From the NCBI RefSeq assembly GCF_902713615.1, contig NC_052152.1, forward strand, positions 35,315,810 to 35,379,809: DNA of 64,000 nt. The letters are read 5' to 3'. The stretch comes from Scyliorhinus canicula (taxonomy: Eukaryota). The stretch's first letter is position 1; the number at the start of each line of letters is the position of its first letter. Positions 10,946 to 50,120 of this stretch are shown piece by piece. The position numbers were made by a program, and so were the translations under genes. The notes beneath the pieces were generated by a model. The model did not search any database. It was not told where the DNA came from and saw only the letters and a list, made by a program, of their open reading frames with translations.

Positions 10946-11002
10946 GTGAGTTTATTTCTTGTCAGGTTTCTCTGAAAAGCTTTCTAAATAGAACATGGAG
11001 CA

Positions 11003-11325
11003 CAGAACATACAGTACAGAAGGAGGCCATTTGACCCATTGAGACTGCACCGACCCACTTAAGCCCTCACTTCCACCCTATCCCCGTAACCCAATAACCC
11101 GTCCTTACCTTTTTTGGACACTAAGGGCAATTTTAGCATGGCCAATGCACCTAACCTGTACGTCTTTGAACTGTGGGAGGAAACCGGAGCACCCGGAGAA
11201 AACCCACGCACACACGGGGAGAACGTGCAGACTCCGCACAGACAGTGACCCCAAGCCGGGAATCGAACCTGGGACCCTGGAGCTGTGAAGCCACAGTGCT
11301 ATCCACTTGTGCTATCATGCTGTCC
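11003..11325 (-). mobile_element. HE1-like V-SINE
   Basis: Reverse-complement head, V-domain and CR1-type tail. Confidence 0.85.
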
Positions 11326-12239
11326 CATGTTAGCTGTTTTTAAATTAATTTCTTCTTACGCTTGAGCTTTCATCAAATAAAAGTGCACCACTGGCGCACC
11401 ACCTCAGGGAAGATGTCTCGGTATTGTACATATGAACTGGGAAAGGAAGGTCATGGGGGTAACATTATAATGTCATCTGTATCAAATTGCCTGAAGAGTT
11501 AACATCATCTCATCTGGGTTTAATTCTTCACTATGTGGGGGGTGTTTTCATGCAAAGAAGGAAGATTACCCTCCAGATTAGGCACCCTTTATAGATAGCT
11601 GGCAGTGGAAAAACGCTGGAATTAATTGCAGTTGGAGTTTCATTAGCTTTGCGAGTGACTCTCCCGTGGTACATGGATAGCCTCTGAAGGTCAACATTAA
11701 GTTGCAGTCCTATGACTCATCCATTTTTTGTAATTTATATTATAAACTCAGTTAAATGTAAACCATGTTAAAAATTAAACAAAAAAGTGGAAAAATGATT
11801 TCAAAGAAGCTCTGTGTCTGTCATAACCTCAGATTGAAACTGTCATCCCACTCACAAGTTACTCGGTTGCTGCACATCAATTTAAAAAAAAATGAATAAT
11901 TGAAGTCATATTATGCAATATGCTAACTGAACAAATCACTATCAGTGGAAGTTTTCAGTTCTGAATGTCCCATTTGAATTTTGCCATGTACAATTTGAAG
12001 AAAAAATTGGAAAAAGCAATGTGACTCCGAGTAGGTGATGCAATGTTGTTCTCCTGTGATAGTATAAAGGGTTAACAGATGGGATATGCTAATATATGAT
12101 GGAGATGATAATGTATCACTAACATTAAGTCAATAATGTTTTAGATTATTTTGAGAGGTTGGAACACCGTGCCCAGGAGCAAACATGCCTATTCTGTAAC
12201 CTGTTAACATTGTGTGTTTTTATTTATTCTTTATTTAAA

Positions 12240-12790: not shown

Positions 12791-14172
12791 ATAAACAAGT
12801 GTTAAGCAGGTACCAGGGTATGTCTACAGTCGGTCTACTGGCCAAGTCCCATGCTGAGAGTCCAAGATAGAAGGACCATGTCAGAACATGGTGGCAACTG
12901 TGGAGACCTTAATGGACACAGAGTGGAGAACACCTTGATAGCAGCTCACGACAAATCAGCAGGTGGAGGAAGCACACTGGAGAGAGGTAGTGATGACCAT
13001 ATCGGCTGAGCAACCTGCCCTTGCTCCACTCGTTTGACTGCCTCGAGGACCTACAGAGAGGCCAGCAATGGAAGATATGGAGATGCCATTTTCTACAGTA
13101 TTGAACAGCATCATGACAAAGAGCAACATGTTCAAGTCAGTTCCTTTCTTTATGCAGTGGGCCCAGTAGCAGACAAGGCTTTATTAAGGCAGGGCGTGCA
13201 AGGGATAACTTCAGTCTTTGAAATATTCTTAAAACCAACTTGATAATCGAACAAGCACGTTTTAACCAGCAGCCGTAATGACCTGGGAATTGATTGATTT
13301 ATTTCTAACTGACCTATATTGTCTAGCTAGTTCTTGCTGAAGGGTGAGCTATCTGTTGGCTGTCTAGGAAGAAAAACGCTCTGACCTTTCTGCTGACCAA
13401 ACATGATCTCACTTTGGATCAAGCAGTCCGGTTTACAAGGCAGGCTGAGCTTCTGAAAATTTAAACCAGTCTATAATTCGACCAACTCCGAGGTTTCACA
13501 TTACTCCACAGGCAGCGGCCCAACCACATGAAAGCCTGCTAAATTAGGCAAAGGGACAGGAAACTCAAAGACGACAACCGTTTGAGATGTCTGCGTTGTG
13601 GCATGGAAAACCCAGCATTGATGCCAGAACTGCCCAGCATACTGGTCCAGTATGGCAAAATTGGACATTTCAAGCATTTCGGCAAATCAAGCAATTTTAA
13701 TCAAGGTGGAAGGCAAGTTTTATATTCGACAAGAAGTGGAAGATCAAGATAAAGGCTACATTACAGAGTTCCGAGGGGAAGTTGATAGTCCTAATCCAGA
13801 TTATTGGTGTTACAGTGCAAATTCAGGCTTGGATACCACCTTTAAAATTGATGCTGGAGCTGCTGTGAATATGTTAGCAGATGATCTCACTGCAACCTCA
13901 AATCCTTCATTCATTAGACACCAAATTACAAGGTCCACATGGCATAGACCTTCCAATTAAACGCAGGATTGGGGCAGCACAGTGGCGCAGTGGTTAGCAT
14001 TGCTGCCTTATGGTGCCGAGGGTCCGAGGTTCGATCCCGGCTCTGGGTCACTGTCTGTGTGGAGTTTGTACATTCTCCCCGTGTTTGAGTGTGTTCGTCT
14101 CCACAGCCAAAGATGTGCAGTCTAGGTGGATTGGCCACGCTAAATTGGCCCCTTAATTGGAAAAAATGAATT

Positions 14173-14458
14173 AGAACATAGAACATAGAACGTACAGCAC
14201 AGAAAAGGCCCTTCGGCCCTCAATGTTGTGCCGAGCCATGATCACCCTACTCAACCCACGTATCCACCCTATACCCGTAACCCAACAACCCCCCCCTTAA
14301 CCTTACATTTATTAGGACACTACGGGCAAATTTAGCATGGCCAATCCACCTAACCCGCACATCTTTGGACTGTGGGAGGAAACCGGAGCACCCGGAGAAA
14401 ACCCACGCACACAGCGGGAGGACGTGCAGACTCCACACAGACAGTGACCCAGCTGGGA
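14173..14458 (-). mobile_element. 5'-truncated HE1-like SINE (left arm of composite)
   Basis: (AGAACAT)n tail, CR1-type 3' region and V-domain. Confidence 0.9.
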
Positions 14459-15707
14459 GTTACTGTCAGTGGGTTATCGCTGGTTACTGAGCTGGGAGTT
14501 ACTGTCAGTGGGTTATCGCTGGTTACTGAGCTGTGTTACTGTCAGTGGGTTATTGCTGGTTACTGAGCTGGGAGTTACTGTCAGTGGGGTTATCGCTGGT
14601 TACTGAGCTGGGAGTTACTGTCAGTGGGTTATCACTGGTTACTGAGCTGGGAGTTACTGTCAGTGGGTTATTGCTGGTTACTGAGCTGTGTTACTGTCAG
14701 TGGGTTATCACTGGTTACTGAGCTGGGAGTTACTGTCAGTGGGTTATCACTGGTTACTGAGCTGTGTTACTGTCAGTGGGTTATCGCTGGGTACTGAGCT
14801 GGGAGTTACTGTCAGTGGGTTATCGCTGGTTACTGAGCTGGGAGTTACTGTCAGTGGGTTATCGCTGGTTACTGAGCTGTGTTACTGTCAGTGGGTTATC
14901 GCTGGGTACTGAGCTGTGTTACTGTCAGTGGGTTATCGCTGGTTACTGAGCTGGGAGTTACTGTCAGTGGGTTATCGCTGGTTACTGAGCTGTGTTACTG
15001 TCAGTGGGTTATCACTGGTTACTGAGCTGGGAGTTATGTTCAGTGGGTTATTGCTGGTTACTGAGCTGCGAGTTACTGTCAGTGGGTTATCGCTGGTTAC
15101 TGAGCTGTGTTACTATTAGTGGGTTATCACTGGTTACTGAGCTGGACGTTGCTGTCAGTGGGTTATCTCTGGTTACTGAGCTGGGAGTTACTGTCAGTGG
15201 GTTATCGCTGGTTACTGAGCTGGGAGTTACTGTCAGTGGGTTATCGCTGGTTGCTGAGTTGGGAGTTACTGTCAGTGGGTTATTGCTGGTTACTGAGCTG
15301 TGTTTCTGTCAGTTGGTTATCTCTGGTTACTGAGCTGGGAGTTACTGTCAGTGGCTTATCGCTGGTTACTGAGTTGTGAGTTACTGTCAGTGGGTTATCT
15401 CTGGTTACTGAGCTGTGTTACTGTCAGTGGGTTATCTCTGGTTACTGAGCTGGGAGTTACTGTCAGTGGGTTATCTCTGGTTACTGAGCTGGGAGTTACT
15501 GTCAGTGGGTTATCTCTGGTTACTGAGCTGGGAGTTACTGTCAGTGGGTTATCACTGGTTACTGAGCTGGGAGTTACTGTCAGTGGGTTATCGCTGGTTA
15601 CTGAGCTGGGTGTTACTGTCAGTGGGTTATCGCTGGTTACTGAGCTGGGAGTTACTGTCAGTGGGTTATCTCTGGTTACTGAGCTGGGAGTTACTGTCAG
15701 TGCGTTA
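14451..15707. repeat. 39-bp minisatellite with 37-bp variant units, about 32 copies
   Basis: Unit CTGGGAGTTACTGTCAGTGGGTTATCGCTGGTTACTGAG repeated head-to-tail; variant CTGTGTTACT replaces CTGGGAGTTACT. Confidence 0.97.
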
Positions 15708-15708
15708 C

Positions 15709-15966
15709 AGAACATAGAACATAGAACAGTACAGCACAGAACAGGCCCTTCAGCCCTCAATGTTGTGCCGAGCCATGATCACCCTACTCAAACCCACGTA
15801 TCCACCCTATACCCGTAACCCAACAACCCCCCCCCCTTAACCTTACATTTATTAGGACACTACGGGCAATTTAGCATGGCCAATCCACCTAACCCGCACA
15901 CCTTTGGACTGTGGGAGGAAACCGGAGCACCCGGAGAAAACCCACGCACACAGCGGGAGGACGTGC
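15709..15966 (-). mobile_element. 5'-truncated HE1-like SINE (right arm of composite)
   Basis: Near-identical direct repeat of 14173-14428. Confidence 0.9.
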
Positions 15967-16521
15967 AATTGGGTCCTCTAAATTTATTTTTAAAAATTAA
16001 AGGCAGGATTATTGCTGCTCTTACTACACAATGCGACAAATCATCCATTCTGACTACACGATCAAAGTGAATCCTTCTTGAGTGGCATCCTTACTGAGTG
16101 GCAATGTTGACATACTTCTAGGAATCCTACTACAAACAGATGATACCCACCATTTGAATGACTCATTGTCTTTCATGCAACCATCTTCAATCTTTAATTT
16201 ATAAGCAGTGGAAATTCAGCCTTCAGAAACTGAGGAGGTTTATACCAATCAGAAGTCAGTTCCTTTCTTTCACAGATACGCCATCCACTGGGCCTGACAT
16301 AGTGATTGGAGTTACAAATCTCTTGGTTCTTCAAGGAGCAAGGCCAAAGGTGGCAGAAGGTACTACAGTAGAATTGGCTCTGCCAAGAAGATAGTGATGA
16401 GGAAAAATCCCTTGTAGCAGTGAGTGATCTCTTGGAGATTGAGTTCCTGGAAGTTGATAGACACACTGTGAAATCTCTGTGCTCTTTTTAGAGGATTGGT
16501 GTTTTTAGCCAATGAGTAGCT

Positions 16522-29537: not shown

Positions 29538-30455
29538 CCTGGTTCTGGGGCTCTGACATTTACACCAATGGGACTGTAGGGGTGAACAGTATTGGCCGGC
29601 AGCTCATTGAGGCAGGACTTTCTCCCAAGTGAGGTGTGAAAGTCCCGCCTCCAGCCAATTAATGCTCCTCAAAGGGTTAAGTGGTTGTGGGGCTGCCATG
29701 ATCAGCAGGATGTCCCCCCCCCCCACTGACTGTTCCAGTGGTGGGGGGTGGGAATCCCCACCGTCCAAAAAATCCTATCCCACGTATTGGAAAATGTCCA
29801 GCACCAAAAATTACGTCAGTTCTCGAGGGGCTAAACTGAAAGGAAAGATCTGACAAGTTTAAACTTTGACACCAGTAATTGAGGCACTTTTGAAAAGATC
29901 TCGAGTATGCAGAAATAGGAAATGGTGAATTCAGAATATTGACCTGGATTTGCCGTAATGTTAAAGGTTATGCTATTCGTGTTCACCATTGTAAATCTGT
30001 TGTTAGATATATACACAGTTAAACATGGAAATCTAGAAGCTGCTGTCAGAGATGCTGTTTGGTGCATGTTGTTGCATTTCTCGCTGATCGACTCAATATT
30101 GAAAAGACCGCAATGGTGTGAACTCGGGGTACTTACTTCCTCTATCAATGGCTGAACATGTTAGGGCTTTGCATTCAGGAGTAATTGCGTTTCTCTTTTT
30201 AAAAATAATTTTTATTAAGATTTTCACAAAATATAAACAAAACAATATTAACCAAACAACCATAGTAAAAACCAAAGAGCAAAAACCAACCCCCCCCCCC
30301 CCCCCCCCCCCGTCAGCAACTACAAAAACAAAACAAAAAAAGAACAAAAAGGAAAGAGATAACACCCGCCACATCCAAACAAACCCAAGTACACAGTTCT
30401 CCCTCCCACCGAACCAAACCCCCCCCCGGGTTGCTGCTGCTGCCGGCCTATTTCC

Positions 30456-33400
30456 CTACCGTTCTGCCAGGAAGTCCAGGAAAGGCTGCCACCGCCTAAA
30501 GAACCCTTGCACCGACCCTCTCAGGGTGAATTTCACCCTCTCCAACTTAATGAACCCCGCCATGTCATTGATCCAGGCCTCCACGCTTGGGAGCCTCGCA
30601 TCCTTCCACTGAAGCAAAATCCTACGCCGGGCTACTAGGGACGCAAAGGCCAGAACACCGGCCTCTTTCGTCTCCTGCACTCCCGGCTCCGCAGCAACCC
30701 CAAATATCGCGAGTCCCCAGCCTGGCTCAACCCTGGATCCTACCACCCTCGACACCGTGCTTGCTACCCCCTTCCAAAAGTCCCCCAACGCTGGGCATGC
30801 CCAGAACATATGGGCATGGTTCGCTGGGCTCACCGAGCACCTAGTACACCTATCCTTGCCCCCAAAAAACCTGCTCATCCTTGTCCCGGTCATATGAGCC
30901 CTATGCCGCACTTTGAACTGTATGAGGCTAAGCCTCGCACAAGAAGAGGAGGAGTTCACCCTTTCCAGGGCATCCGCCCACGTCCCCTCCTCAATCTCCT
31001 CACCCAGCTCCTCTTCCCATTTACCCTTCAGCTCCTCCACCGAGGCCTCATCCACCTCCTGCATAACATGGTACACATCCGAAATCGTCCCTCCTCCAAC
31101 CCACACCCCCGAGAGCACCCTGTCCCGAACCCCCTGCGGGGGCAACATAGGGAACCCCGCCACTTGCCGCCTGGCAAACGCCTTAACCTGCATGTACCTG
31201 AACATGTTCCCCGGGGGGAGCCCAAACTTCCCCTCCAACTCACCCAGGCTCGCAAACCTCCCATCTACAAACAGATCCCTCAACCTCCTAATACCTGCCC
31301 TGTGCCAGCTGAGAAACCCCCCATCGACGCACCCCGAGACAAACCGGTGGTTCCCCCGTATCGGGGACTCCATCGAGCCCCCCACCTCCCCCCTATGCCG
31401 TCTCCATTGCCCCCAAATTTTCAGGGTAGCCACCACCACCGGGCTCGTAGTATACCTCGTTGGAGGGAGTGGCAACGGCGCCGTTACCAGCGCCTCCAGG
31501 CTCGTATTCACACAGGACGCCATCTCCACCCTCTTCCATGCTGCCCCCTCCCCGTCCATTACCCACTTACGCACCATTGCTGCGTTGGCAGCCCAGTAAT
31601 ACCCACAGTGGTTGGGCAGCGCCAGCCCTTCCCCATCCCTGCCCCGCTCCAAAAACACCCTTCTCACCCTTGGTGTCCCGTGTGCCCATACAAGCCCCGT
31701 GATGCTCCTGTTGACCCTCCTAAAAAAGGCCTTCGGGATAAGGATGGGGAGGCACTGGAACAGGAACAAAAACCTCGGGAGCACCGTCATCTTGACGGAC
31801 TGCACCCTCCCCGCCAGTGACAGCGGTAACATATCCCACCTCTTAAACTCCTCCTCCATTTGCTCCACCAGCCTTGTGAGGTTAAGCTTGTGCAGGGCCC
31901 CCCAGCTCCTAGCCACCTGGACTCCCAGATACCTCCCTGCCTGCTTCAGTGGGAGCCTACCAATCCCCTCCTCCTGATCCCCCGAGTGCACCACGAACAG
32001 CTCGCTCTTACCCAGGTTGAGCTTATACCCAGAAAAGCCCCCAAATTCGCCGAGAATCCTCACCTCTGGCATTCCCCCCACCAGGTCCGCCACATACAGC
32101 AACAGGTCGTCCGCATAAAGCGACCCTCGATGCTCCTCCCCACCCCGCACCAGGCCCCTCCAGTTCCCTGACTCCCTCAGCGCCATGGCCAGGGGCTCAA
32201 TTGCCAACGCAAAGAGCAAGGGGGACAGGGGACACCCCTGTCTCGTCCCCCGGTGCAGCCGAAAGTACTCCGACCTCCTCCTATTCGTGGCTACACTCGC
32301 CATCGGGGCCTCATGGAGCAGCCTCACCCAACGGACAAACCCCTCCCCAAACCCAAACATTTCCAACACCTCCCACAGATACCCCCACTCAACCCTATCA
32401 AAGGCCTTCTCCGCGTCTAATGCCACCACTAGCTCCGCCTCCCCTTCCACAGCCGGCATCATAATGACATTCAGAAGCCTTCATATGTTGGTATTCAACT
32501 GCCTTCCCTTTACAAACCCCGTCTGGTCCTCGTGAATGACCCCCGGCACACAATCCTCTATCCTTGTAGCTAAGATCTTCGCCAACAGCTTGGCGTCTAC
32601 ATTTAGCAGCGAGATCGGCCTATATGACCCACACTGCAAGGGGTCCTTGCCCCGCTTAAGGATCAAGGAAATCAGCGCCCGTGACATAGTTTGGAGCAAA
32701 GTCCCCCCCTCCCTTGCTTCGTTAAAGGTCCGAACCAACAGGGGGCCCAACAGGTCCACATACATTTTATAAAATACGGCCGGAAACCCATCCGGCCCCG
32801 GCGCCTTCCCCGACTGCATGCTGCCAATCCCAGTGACCAGCTCCTCCAGCTCAATCGGCGCCTCCAGCTCAATCGGCGCCCCCAGTCCCTCCACCTGCCC
32901 CGCCTCCACCTTCGGAAATCGCAGCTTGTCCAAGATGCGCCCCATTCCACCACCCCCTTCACCGGGGGTTCAGACCGGTACAATTCCCCATAAAAGTCCC
33001 TAAAGACCCCATTAACGTCTACCCCCCTCCGCACCACCTTCCCATCTCTATCCTTCACTCCCCCAATCTCCCTGGCTGCGTCTCGCTTTCGGAGCTAGTG
33101 CCAGCATCCTACTCGCCTTCTCCCCGCATTCATACACCGCTCCCTGTGCTTTCCTCCACTGAGCTTCCGCCTTTCTGGTGGTCAGCAGATCGAACCTGGC
33201 CTGAAGGCTACGCCGCTCCCCCAGCAATCCCTCCTCCGGAGCCTCCGCATATCTCCTGTCCACCCTCACCATCTCCCCCACCAATCTCTCCCACTCTCTC
33301 TGCTCTCCCCTCTCCCTATGGGTTCGGATGGAAATCAACTCCCCTCTAATCAACGTCTTCAATGCCTCCCAGACCGTCCCCACTCGGACCTTCCCGTTAT

Positions 33401-34262
33401 TGTTGGCCTCAAGGTACCTCTCGATACACCCCCGAACCCTCCCGCCCACCTCCTCATCTGCCAGCAGCCCCACCTCCAAGCGCCAGAGCGGGCGCTGGTC
33501 CCTCTCCTCCCCCAGCCCGAGGTCCACCCAGTGCGGGGCATGATCCGAAATGGCTATGGCAGAGTATTCAGCATCCTCCACCCTCGAAACCAGCCCCCTG
33601 CTCAGGACAAAAAAATTGATGCTGGATTAGGCCTTATGCACGTGGGAGAAAAACGAGTACTCCCTGGCCCTTGGCCTCGCAAACCTCCAGGGATCCACAC
33701 CTCCCATCTGATCCATAAACCCCCTCAACACCTTAGCCGCCACCGGCCTCCTACCCATCCGGGACCTGGATCGATCCAATGGGGGATCCAGCACCGTGTT
33801 GAAGTCCCCCCCCCCCCAATGATCAGGCCCCCCACCTCCAGGTCCGGAATGCGGCCCAACATGCGCCGCATAAACCCTGCATCGTCCCAGTTCGGGGCGT
33901 AGACATTCACCAGTACCACCCGCTCCCCCTGCAGCTTACCACTCACCATCACATACCTCCCGCCACTGTCAGCCACCACATTTGACGCCTCAAACGACAC
34001 CCTCTTTCCCACCATGATCGCCACCCCCCCGATTCTTCGCATCCAGCCCTGAATGAAATACTTGGCCCACCCATTCCTTCCTCAGTCGAACCTGGTCCGC
34101 CACCTTCAGGTGCATCTCCTGGAGCATGGCCACATCCGCCTTCAGCCCCTTCAAGTGCGTAAACACCCGGGCCCGCTTGACCGGCCCATTCAGCCCCCTC
34201 ACATTCCAAGTTATCAGCCGGATCAGAGGGCTCCCTGCCCCCCGCCCCTGCCGACTAGCCAT
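30456..34262 (-). pseudogene. L1 ORF2 (AP endonuclease, reverse transcriptase, Cys-rich C-terminus), disrupted
   Basis: RLITWNVRGLN...AMLQE; LVNVYAPN; ISDHAP; GKAPGPDGF; SYRPISLLNVDAK; LDAEKAFDRVEW; GTRQGCPLSPLLF; LYADDLL; CTRC...HMFWAC, split over several frames. Confidence 0.93.
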
Positions 34263-34917
34263 AACCCATCCCCAGCCCGCCACTGGCCAGCGCCCCCCGC
34301 TCGGCCTGTTCCCCACGGCGGCAACTCCCCCCCCCCCCCCAGCACCCCCTGCATACTCCAGCTCCTTCCTGGCCATTTCAGGTGCAACCTGGTATCCCCC
34401 CCCCCCCCCCCCAAGGCTAGGACCCCTCCTAGCCGCACCCCCCATCCATAGCACTCCCGTGAGCCAGCTAACGTCTGCTGACCCCGGCGACTCCTGCCAC
34501 ACCGCCGACCCCTCCCCACGTGGGGCTACTCCTCCTCCTCCGTGCCCATCAGCAGACCCTCCTACCCCCCCCCCCCCACCCCCGCTCTTGCGCGGGAAAA
34601 TAAAAACAAGCAAAGGCCCGCGCTTCTCAGCCCCGACCCCGCCCCCATCACCCCGCAGCGTGGGAAACAAGAGTAAAGCCCGCGCTTTCGCCCTGCCCAA
34701 CCCCACCTCCTCTAGGGCAGCTCCCATTGCCGGTCCCCACCACCAGCTCCCCGCACTCCCAGTTTACCTCCCCGCCCGAACCCGTCCACCAGACCCATAC
34801 AAAAAGACATCGCCCCACCCACCCTGAAGCCAACACACATCCTGCATGAAACAGAGAACCCCCCCTCCAAAAAATAGACACAGTTACATTTACATACAAA
34901 ACCCCCATCCCTGACCC

Positions 34918-48289: not shown

Positions 48290-50120
48290 GTATTGTAAAC
48301 TGTGAAAGAAGTTGAAGTTTATAACTTCAGAAGGACATAGTCAAGTTGGTGGAGTGGGCAGATAGATGGCAGATGAAATTTAATGTGTAGCAGTGTGAGG
48401 TGATGCATTTTGGTCAGAAGAACATGGAGAGACAATATTGAATAAGGAGTAAAATTCTTAAAGGGGTGCAGGAGCAGAGGGAGCTGGCTGTATATGTGCA
48501 TAGATCATTGAAGATGGCAGGACAGGGCAGCACAGTGGCCTAGTGGTTAGCACAGCTGCCTCACGGCACTGAGGTCGCAGGTTCGATCCCGGCTCTGGGT
48601 CACTGTCCGTGTCGGGTTTGCACATTCTCCCCGTGTCTGCATGGGTTTCGCCCCCACAACCCAAAAATGTGCCGCGTAGGTGGATTGGCCACTCTAAATT
48701 GCCCCTTTATTGGAAAAAATAATTGGGTAATCTAAATTTATTTATTTTTTAAATTTAAAAAGAAGATGGCAGGACAGGTGGCGAGAACAGTTAATAAAGA
48801 TTGCAGTATTCTGGGCTTTATTAATAGTGGCATAGAGTACAAGAGCAAGGAGGTTATGGTGAAATTATACAAGACACTAGTTAGACCTTGGCCGGAATTT
48901 TGTGTACAGTTCTGGGTGCCACACTATAGGAAGGATGTGAATGCACTGGAGAGATTACAGAAGAAGTTTACAAGAATTGTTCCAGGGTTGAGAAACTTCA
49001 GTGATGAGGATGTTAAGGAATGGGTTAAAAGTCATTCCACAATAATTGACACTGATATGTAAATAATAATAACCATTTATTGTCACAAGTATGAAGTTAC
49101 TGTGAAAAGCCCCTAGTCACCACATTCCGGTGCCTGTTCGGGTAAGCTGGAATTGAACCCCCACTGCTGGCATTGTTCTGCATCACAAACCAGCTGTCTA
49201 GCTCACTGAGCTAAACTGGCCCTGCAGAGGCTGCAGGTGGTCTTTGGCAGCATGTGATACGGTGAGAGAATTTTGTACAGAGCTGTGTTCAAGGAAAATA
49301 AAGGTGTTTTGTGAAAAGGAGCAGAATTCTTGAATCTTTACTCAACAACAGCCAGAAGCTAACAGAGGATAGATTGGAGCGGATCGGACTGTTCTCCTTG
49401 AAGAGAAGGCTGAGAGGAGATTTGATAGATAGAACATAGAACAGTACAGCACAGAACAGGCCCTTCGGCCCTCGATGTTGTGCCGAACAATGATCACCCC
49501 ACTTAAACCCACGTAACCCGTATACCCGTAACCCAACAATCCCCCCATTAACCTTACACTACGGGCAATTTAGCATGGCCAATCCACCTAACCCGCACAT
49601 CTTTGGACTGTGGGAGGAAACCGGAGCACCCGGAGGAAACCCACGCGCACACGGGGAGGACGTGCAGACTCCACACAGACAGTGACCCAGCCGGGAATCG
49701 AACCTGGGAACCTGGAGCTGTGAAGCATTGATGCTAACCACCATGCTACCGTGAGGCCCCAAATCATGTTCCAAATCATGAGGGGGCTGGACCAGAGTAG
49801 ATAGAGAGAAATTGTTCCCGCTTATAAAAGCATCAAGAACGAGAGGGCACAGATTTAAAATGATTTACAAAAGAAGCAAATGTGATGTGAGAAAAAATCT
49901 TTTTTCACACAACACGTGGTTCGGGTCTGGAATGCTCTGCCTGGCATTGTGGTGGAGGCAGGTTCAATTAAGGCATTCAAGAGGGCAGCAGATGATTATT
50001 TGAATAGAAAAAATGTGCAGGGGTACGGGGAAAAGGCAGGGGAATGGCACTTAATTATGATGCTCGTTTGGAGAGCCGGTGCACACACGATGGGCCAAAT
50101 GTGCGCTGTAAGGATTCTGC
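48290..50120 (+). mobile_element. CR1 LINE 3' portion with three nested SINEs (48525-48761 +, 49063-49222 -, 49428-49760 -)
   Basis: ILGFINSGIEYKSKEVMVKLYKTLVRP...; RVWNALP; the 48525 SINE has 15-bp TSD GAAGATGGCAGGACA at 48510-48524 and 48762-48776. Confidence 0.85.

Follow-up and report, generated by a model that had tools for sequence, protein, structure and literature searches.

A 1,794-bp block of shark DNA, lying at positions 14173-15966 of the 64-kb stretch that we analysed (the window), consists of two same-orientation, 5'-truncated copies of one SINE with a 1.25-kb minisatellite between them, and it interrupts the tail of another SINE at an exactly duplicated AATT. Judging from these features, we lean towards a single LINE-driven retro-insertion (target-primed reverse transcription) having delivered the block as one composite cDNA, in a one-off event rather than through the spread of a family. 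On our best reading the block is a chimeric or transducing retro-insertion, which is a known kind of event, carrying a minisatellite, and it represents a single case. The features on which the analysis rests are as follows, in order along the plus strand.

13971-14172, plus strand: 5' part of the host SINE, comprising a tRNA-like head, the shared core and the tail as far as AATT; aligns with eight other family copies
14169-14172, no strand: left copy of the target-site duplication AATT, where the host-family consensus has a single AATT
14173-14458, minus strand: left arm, comprising 286 nt of 3'-terminal sequence from a probable V-SINE/HE1-like SINE, aligned to the right arm and to full-length relatives
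14173-14191: tail of the left arm, (AGAACAT)2AGAAC, 19 nt
14451-14458, no strand: junction overlap AGCTGGGA, common to the SINE (AGCCGGGA in relatives) and the first array unit
14451-15708, no strand: minisatellite, 1,258 bp, of 39/37-bp units, defined by Tandem Repeats Finder and manual unit cutting
15709-15966, minus strand: right arm, comprising 258 nt of 3'-terminal sequence from the left-arm SINE, 96.9% identical to the left arm
15967-15970, no strand: right copy of the target-site duplication AATT, from the host-family alignment
15971-16003, plus strand: remaining 3' tail of the host SINE (GGGTCCTCTAAATTTATTTTTAAAAA...), continuing the host-family alignment straight after AATT
Internal junctions: ...GACCCAGC / TGGGAGTT... 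(SINE to array) and ...GCGTTAC / AGAACATAG... (array to right arm)

Target site and SINE arms

The host element is an old tRNA-derived SINE, older than the block. All eight other host-family copies aligned from the window read an uninterrupted ...AAAATGAATTGGGTACTCTAAATTTATT across the insertion site, so the block lies inside the host tail with 4 bases (AATT) duplicated and no host bases lost. The empty site (...AAAATGAATTGGGTCCTC...) was rebuilt and compared against the window. The first-pass annotation had described a plus-strand SINE interrupted in its tail at a duplicated AATT, and the eight uninterrupted copies bear this out. It had also called that SINE unrelated to the arms, which was wrong: the host and arm families have head and core in common (~72% over the core) and differ in the tail alone. 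The shared segment, present in the host SINE and in the antisense left arm, forms a 45-nt inverted repeat that is 89% complementary (14107-14151 versus 14324-14368). These two inverted SINE segments caused the sole Rfam match, to the miRNA family MIR8562, which fell far below threshold (it scored 29 bits, where the gathering score is 211).

Both arms are antisense on the plus strand, with the SINE 3' tail at the left of each and the place of the tRNA-like head at the right. They differ from one another by 3 substitutions and 4 small indel events, the latter mostly in homopolymers, against 252 matches over ~255 aligned positions (K2P 0.012). The next closest copies in the window reach 88.7% (49429-49696) and 78.6% (10990-11261). 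The near-identical, same-orientation, truncated arms that had been reported on either side of the array were found where they had been placed, as were the two diagnostic strings common to both arms and different in the 49.4-kb copy. When that copy was taken as the outgroup, every difference between the arms was private to one of them (four in the left arm, three in the right). Such a pattern would fit descent of the arms from one sequence, and two copies of one young master would fit it equally.

We aligned the arms to two full-length relatives (49429-49762 and 10990-11327), which possess a head, a core in common with the host family and a tail of 7-bp repeats. On this basis the arms are probably copies of a V-SINE/HE1-like SINE, with HE1 itself compared by description. 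HE1 is listed as the V-SINE of sharks and rays, with a tail of the HER1 type (PMC3747384). The 88%-related full-length copy is itself nested in another repeat (49380-49860; ...GAGGAGATTTGATAGA / ...AAATCATGAGGGGGCTGGACC...).

The opening 19 nt of the two arms are identical. The left-arm tail abuts the left AATT, and the 49.4-kb and 11.0-kb copies end no more than 1 nt from the same point; the outer end of the left arm is the natural 3' terminus of the SINE family. From this end the left arm tracks the SINE consensus for 286 nt and leaves it at ...GACCCAGC, 28 nt further along than the right arm. The right arm, which is the 5'-most module of the block, is truncated after 258 nt, within the core, at ...GACGTGC(A), and its final A overlaps the right AATT by 1 nt; this copy does not have the tRNA-like head of the full copies. 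On the SINE-sense strand both arms contain TTTT (14398-14401 and 15937-15940). The sequence here is GGGTTTTCTCC in the arms as well as in the 11.0-kb copy, its TTTT being a minimal Pol III terminator within the element, and the 49.4-kb copy has TTT only.

A LINE also lies on the minus strand of the window (~30100-34830); its ORFs encode an endonuclease (Exo_endo_phos) and a reverse transcriptase (RVT_1) and reach 668 aa. The tail of the arms is absent from the 3' region of this APE+RT element (~30.1-34.8 kb), so it is not their evident partner.

The minisatellite and its junctions

Tandem Repeats Finder returned a single array at 14451-15707, with a period of 39, 32.7 copies and 91% matches. 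Cutting by hand at unit starts gave 22 units of 39 bp, nine of 37 bp, one of 40 bp and a terminal partial unit of 27 bp, in agreement with the ~1.26-kb array of 39/37-bp units first reported between the arms. The 37-bp units have AGCTGTG... in place of AGCTGGGAG... Unit variants are clustered (units with ...ATCTCTGG, for example, lie mostly toward the right), and the array has therefore undergone local duplication in the past. Neither the 39-bp unit nor anything resembling it was found elsewhere in the 64-kb window.

We considered whether the unit descends from the SINE. The opening of the unit (14451-14475, plus strand), compared with the SINE core in sense orientation, gave GCTGGGTCACTGTCTGTG as its best likeness, inverted relative to the arms. 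This likeness was equalled by shuffles in 4% of trials and is too weak for us to uphold such an origin. The same likeness makes CCCAGCTGGG palindromic at the left junction; a fold-back or hairpin there was rejected, its stability being no better than that of shuffles (z -0.68).

Two ORFs run through the array (15300-15818, plus strand, 172 aa; 15395-15760, minus strand, 121 aa) and encode 13-residue repeats (GVTVSGLSLVTEL on the plus strand), since a period of 39 bp keeps runs of 39-bp units in frame. A search of a protein collection with the 172-aa ORF returned zero relatives. Metagenome scans, one for the unit and one for a string specific to the arms, gave no match in a collection that seems to contain no DNA of this animal. 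Of the words sampled from the array stretch (14430-15740), a flat share of 0.07-0.12 was present in sequencing runs that ranged in size from 90 million to 2.7 billion letters and carried three organism labels. This flat share hints at multi-copy 31-mers of the unit, few in number and common to more than one species, with the positions of the words on the sequence not placeable; plain arrays of the 39-bp unit without SINE arms could also produce it.

Past ...GACCCAGC the relatives continue with CGGGAATCGAACC, whereas the left arm continues with TGGGAGTTACTG, which is array sequence. A microhomology between left arm and array had been claimed at 14451-14458. The overlap AGCTGGGA is present, but at 7 of 8 bases rather than 8 of 8, because the relatives read AGCCGGGA; it forms part of a wider SINE/unit patch matching at 12 of 17 positions. 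A joint within such a patch is what would be expected of a template switch or of a microhomology joint. At the other junction, the right arm begins immediately after the partial unit ...GTGCGTTAC. Between one side of the SINE and the other, the array phases overlap by 18-26 nt, and a donor-site duplication could account for this. A second copy of either internal junction was absent from the 64-kb window.

Origin of the block

The entry of the block as one unit, by retro-insertion, appears well supported. The first-pass annotation had proposed a single insertion, and this proposal is sustained in that AATT is duplicated exactly, the host consensus is intact across the site, the natural 3' end of the SINE adjoins the duplication, and the opposite end is 5'-truncated. 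Retro-insertion of one composite cDNA is the best reading because the natural 3' tail, the 5' truncation and the 1-nt overlap mark target-primed reverse transcription. The tail of the host SINE would have been nicked on the plus strand after AATT, and reverse transcription primed at the 3' tail of a SINE RNA would have copied 286 nt to give the left arm. Synthesis would then have crossed the similarity patch (AGC[C/T]GGGA) into 1.25 kb of 39-bp minisatellite, and entered another copy of the arm SINE precisely at its 3' end, copying 258 nt of it to give the right arm. There it would have stopped, the 5' end being joined through the 1-nt overlap and a 4-bp duplication left behind.

The geometry of the insertion and its junctions are read directly from the alignments, and from them we infer the nature of the template. 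One candidate is a single read-through transcript of a donor locus in which the SINE lay inside the minisatellite and had been duplicated with the array by unequal exchange. For this template we also note the length of the block, 1.17 times a 1,536-bp period, and the possible donor-site duplication in the array phases. It would need Pol II read-through, as the TTTT in each arm would hinder a long Pol III transcript. The other candidate is three RNAs joined by two switches, from a SINE RNA to an array RNA at the similarity patch, and from there onto a further SINE RNA, precisely at its 3' end. Double template switches that yield tripartite chimeras flanked by target-site duplications are documented for LINE reverse transcriptases (PMC2104539). 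The two templates fit the block equally well. Of the earlier suggestion that one reverse-transcription event had copied a SINE and carried a minisatellite with it, the carriage in one event therefore stands as the best explanation, and the choice between read-through and switching stays evenly balanced. We count against the reading of one insertion that the 4-bp duplication is short and that the arms are without a promoter-bearing head; for the latter reason this copy gives no indication of how the composite RNA was made.

The geometry of the block would also suit an earlier SINE copy that took up a further insertion in its tail. In such a two-step history, the 258-bp truncated SINE that is now the right arm would have inserted first, making the AATT duplication, and a later retrocopy of minisatellite plus 286 nt of SINE would have been primed on its tail, landing between the duplication and the resident tail. 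The observed order (duplication, left arm, array, right arm, duplication) would result, the 7-bp-repeat tail could have primed through base pairing, and the symmetric private changes in the arms require no common event. Against this, two copies of the same subfamily must have arrived at one site, and the second nick must have been placed so as to leave tails identical over 19 nt without an extra duplication. An array-plus-SINE chimera is still required, so no assumption is saved, and we consider the two-step history unlikely.

Somewhat harder to sustain is a mobile SINE-VNTR-SINE family of the SVA/LAVA kind, repeatedly transcribed and retrotransposed by the partner LINE of the SINE. The block does have a central VNTR between same-orientation TE-derived modules in one oriented unit, and the exact AATT duplication with a natural SINE tail abutting it carries the marks of LINE machinery. 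The flat word share of the array hints in the same direction, being more readily given by a few multi-copy, species-shared words than by one locus, although these shares are not placeable on the sequence and other arrays, without SINE arms, could give them. However, zero further copies of the unit or of the junctions occur in the 64 kb, this copy has neither head nor promoter and thus no 5' module to drive transcription, and VNTR composites have so far been described in hominoids only (PMC4432496). We therefore regard a family as quite improbable. If there were one, it would mark the first case of a VNTR composite retrotransposon beyond the hominoid primates and give SINEs a working means of seeding minisatellites genome-wide.

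Capture at the DNA level is less credible again. A fragment, or an eccDNA circle, from a tandem [SINE + array] locus would here have entered the host SINE by ligation while a break was being repaired. Minisatellites shed circles readily. With a 1,536-bp period (14173 to 15709), the block comes to 1.17 units, a length to be expected of either a permuted circle or a fragment of a tandem locus, and there are short overlaps at both of its ends. Nonetheless, the end of the fragment would have to coincide to the base with the natural 3' terminus of the SINE, and since the chance of a random DNA break there is only ~1 in 1,500, the RNA route is favoured over capture of a fragment or circle. A clean 4-bp duplication without host loss is also typical of staggered nicking and not of break repair. 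Capture is accordingly very unlikely in our estimation.

An assembly artefact, or growth of the array and second arm in place, is scarcely credible: tandem arrays between repeats are hard to assemble, but a mis-join would not rebuild the host SINE exactly together with a 4-bp duplication, which makes mis-assembly unlikely, and growth in place has no source for 28 nt of genuine SINE sequence, present in the left arm and missing from the right. Because growth in place cannot explain these 28 nt, the array-plus-SINE composite came from elsewhere, whatever the order of events.

Two known element classes were also rejected. An LTR, TRIM or LARD element does not fit, as the arms are unequal (the left extends 28 nt further on the SINE consensus), start with AG... 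and not TG...CA, and are plain 5'-truncated SINE copies. A Helitron does not fit either, as the ends of the block do not match TC...CTRR and a target duplication is present.

Comparison with known composite insertions

The closest parallels to a single composite retro-insertion are the tripartite chimeras WEIRD/Mg-SINE/MGL of M. grisea and B2/U6/L1 of mouse, in which three directly fused modules lie within one target duplication (PMC2104539). The features of such template-switch chimeras were found in the shark block: its modules are directly fused, one target duplication surrounds them, and the 3' module ends at a LINE-recognised terminus. As in those chimeras, the 5' module also starts at the exact 3' end of its own RNA (PMC2104539). 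Unlike them, the shark block has the same SINE as both outer modules and a 1.25-kb minisatellite in the middle, and its partner would be a tail-specific (stringent, CR1/L2-like) LINE, not L1 or MGL (PMC2104539).

The block resembles SVA, LAVA, PVA and FVA in its central VNTR between TE-derived modules and in insertion by LINE machinery with a target duplication (PMC4432496, PMC3287187). These hominoid elements form multi-copy families in which the 5' module is defined and L1 makes use of a poly(A) tail (PMC4432496, PMC3287187). In contrast, the shark block is present as one copy in the 64-kb window, has the same SINE at both ends and a short-repeat tail, and has no 5' head.

In 5' and 3' transduction by L1 and SVA, read-through transcripts carry flanking donor sequence, and the proof lies in finding the donor. 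The shark block is similar in that non-element sequence was moved to a new site within one retro-insertion, but its carried sequence lies between two element copies and not at one end.

Tandem repeats bracketed by element arms, as in the block, are also seen in the satDNA-like repeats borne by Helentrons in oyster (PMC7492417), in DINE-TR1 and in pearl (PMC9659126), and those repeats reach new sites by transposition. Those carriers are non-autonomous elements of the DNA or rolling-circle type whose left end differs from the right, whereas the ends of the shark block are direct retroposon copies with the marks of insertion by reverse transcription. Minisatellites born from SINEs, such as the mouse B1-derived VNTR and those derived from Alu, are likewise physically joined to a SINE (PMC9659126). 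Unlike the shark array, which is enclosed by two SINE copies, they grow in place from the SINE (PMC9659126), and descent of the shark unit from the SINE is marginal (shuffle fraction 0.04).

If a single composite retro-insertion did occur, the locus would clearly show that a minisatellite of 1.25 kb, already formed, can travel to a new site by SINE/LINE retrotransposition in a cartilaginous fish, with a tail-specific partner LINE rather than L1 as the machinery, and this would be one concrete route for the dispersal of tandem arrays. A single case adds an example and not a principle; it would gain much greater weight if the junctions recurred elsewhere in the genome. At the locus itself, the two direct SINE arms make the block prone to recombinational deletion or expansion.
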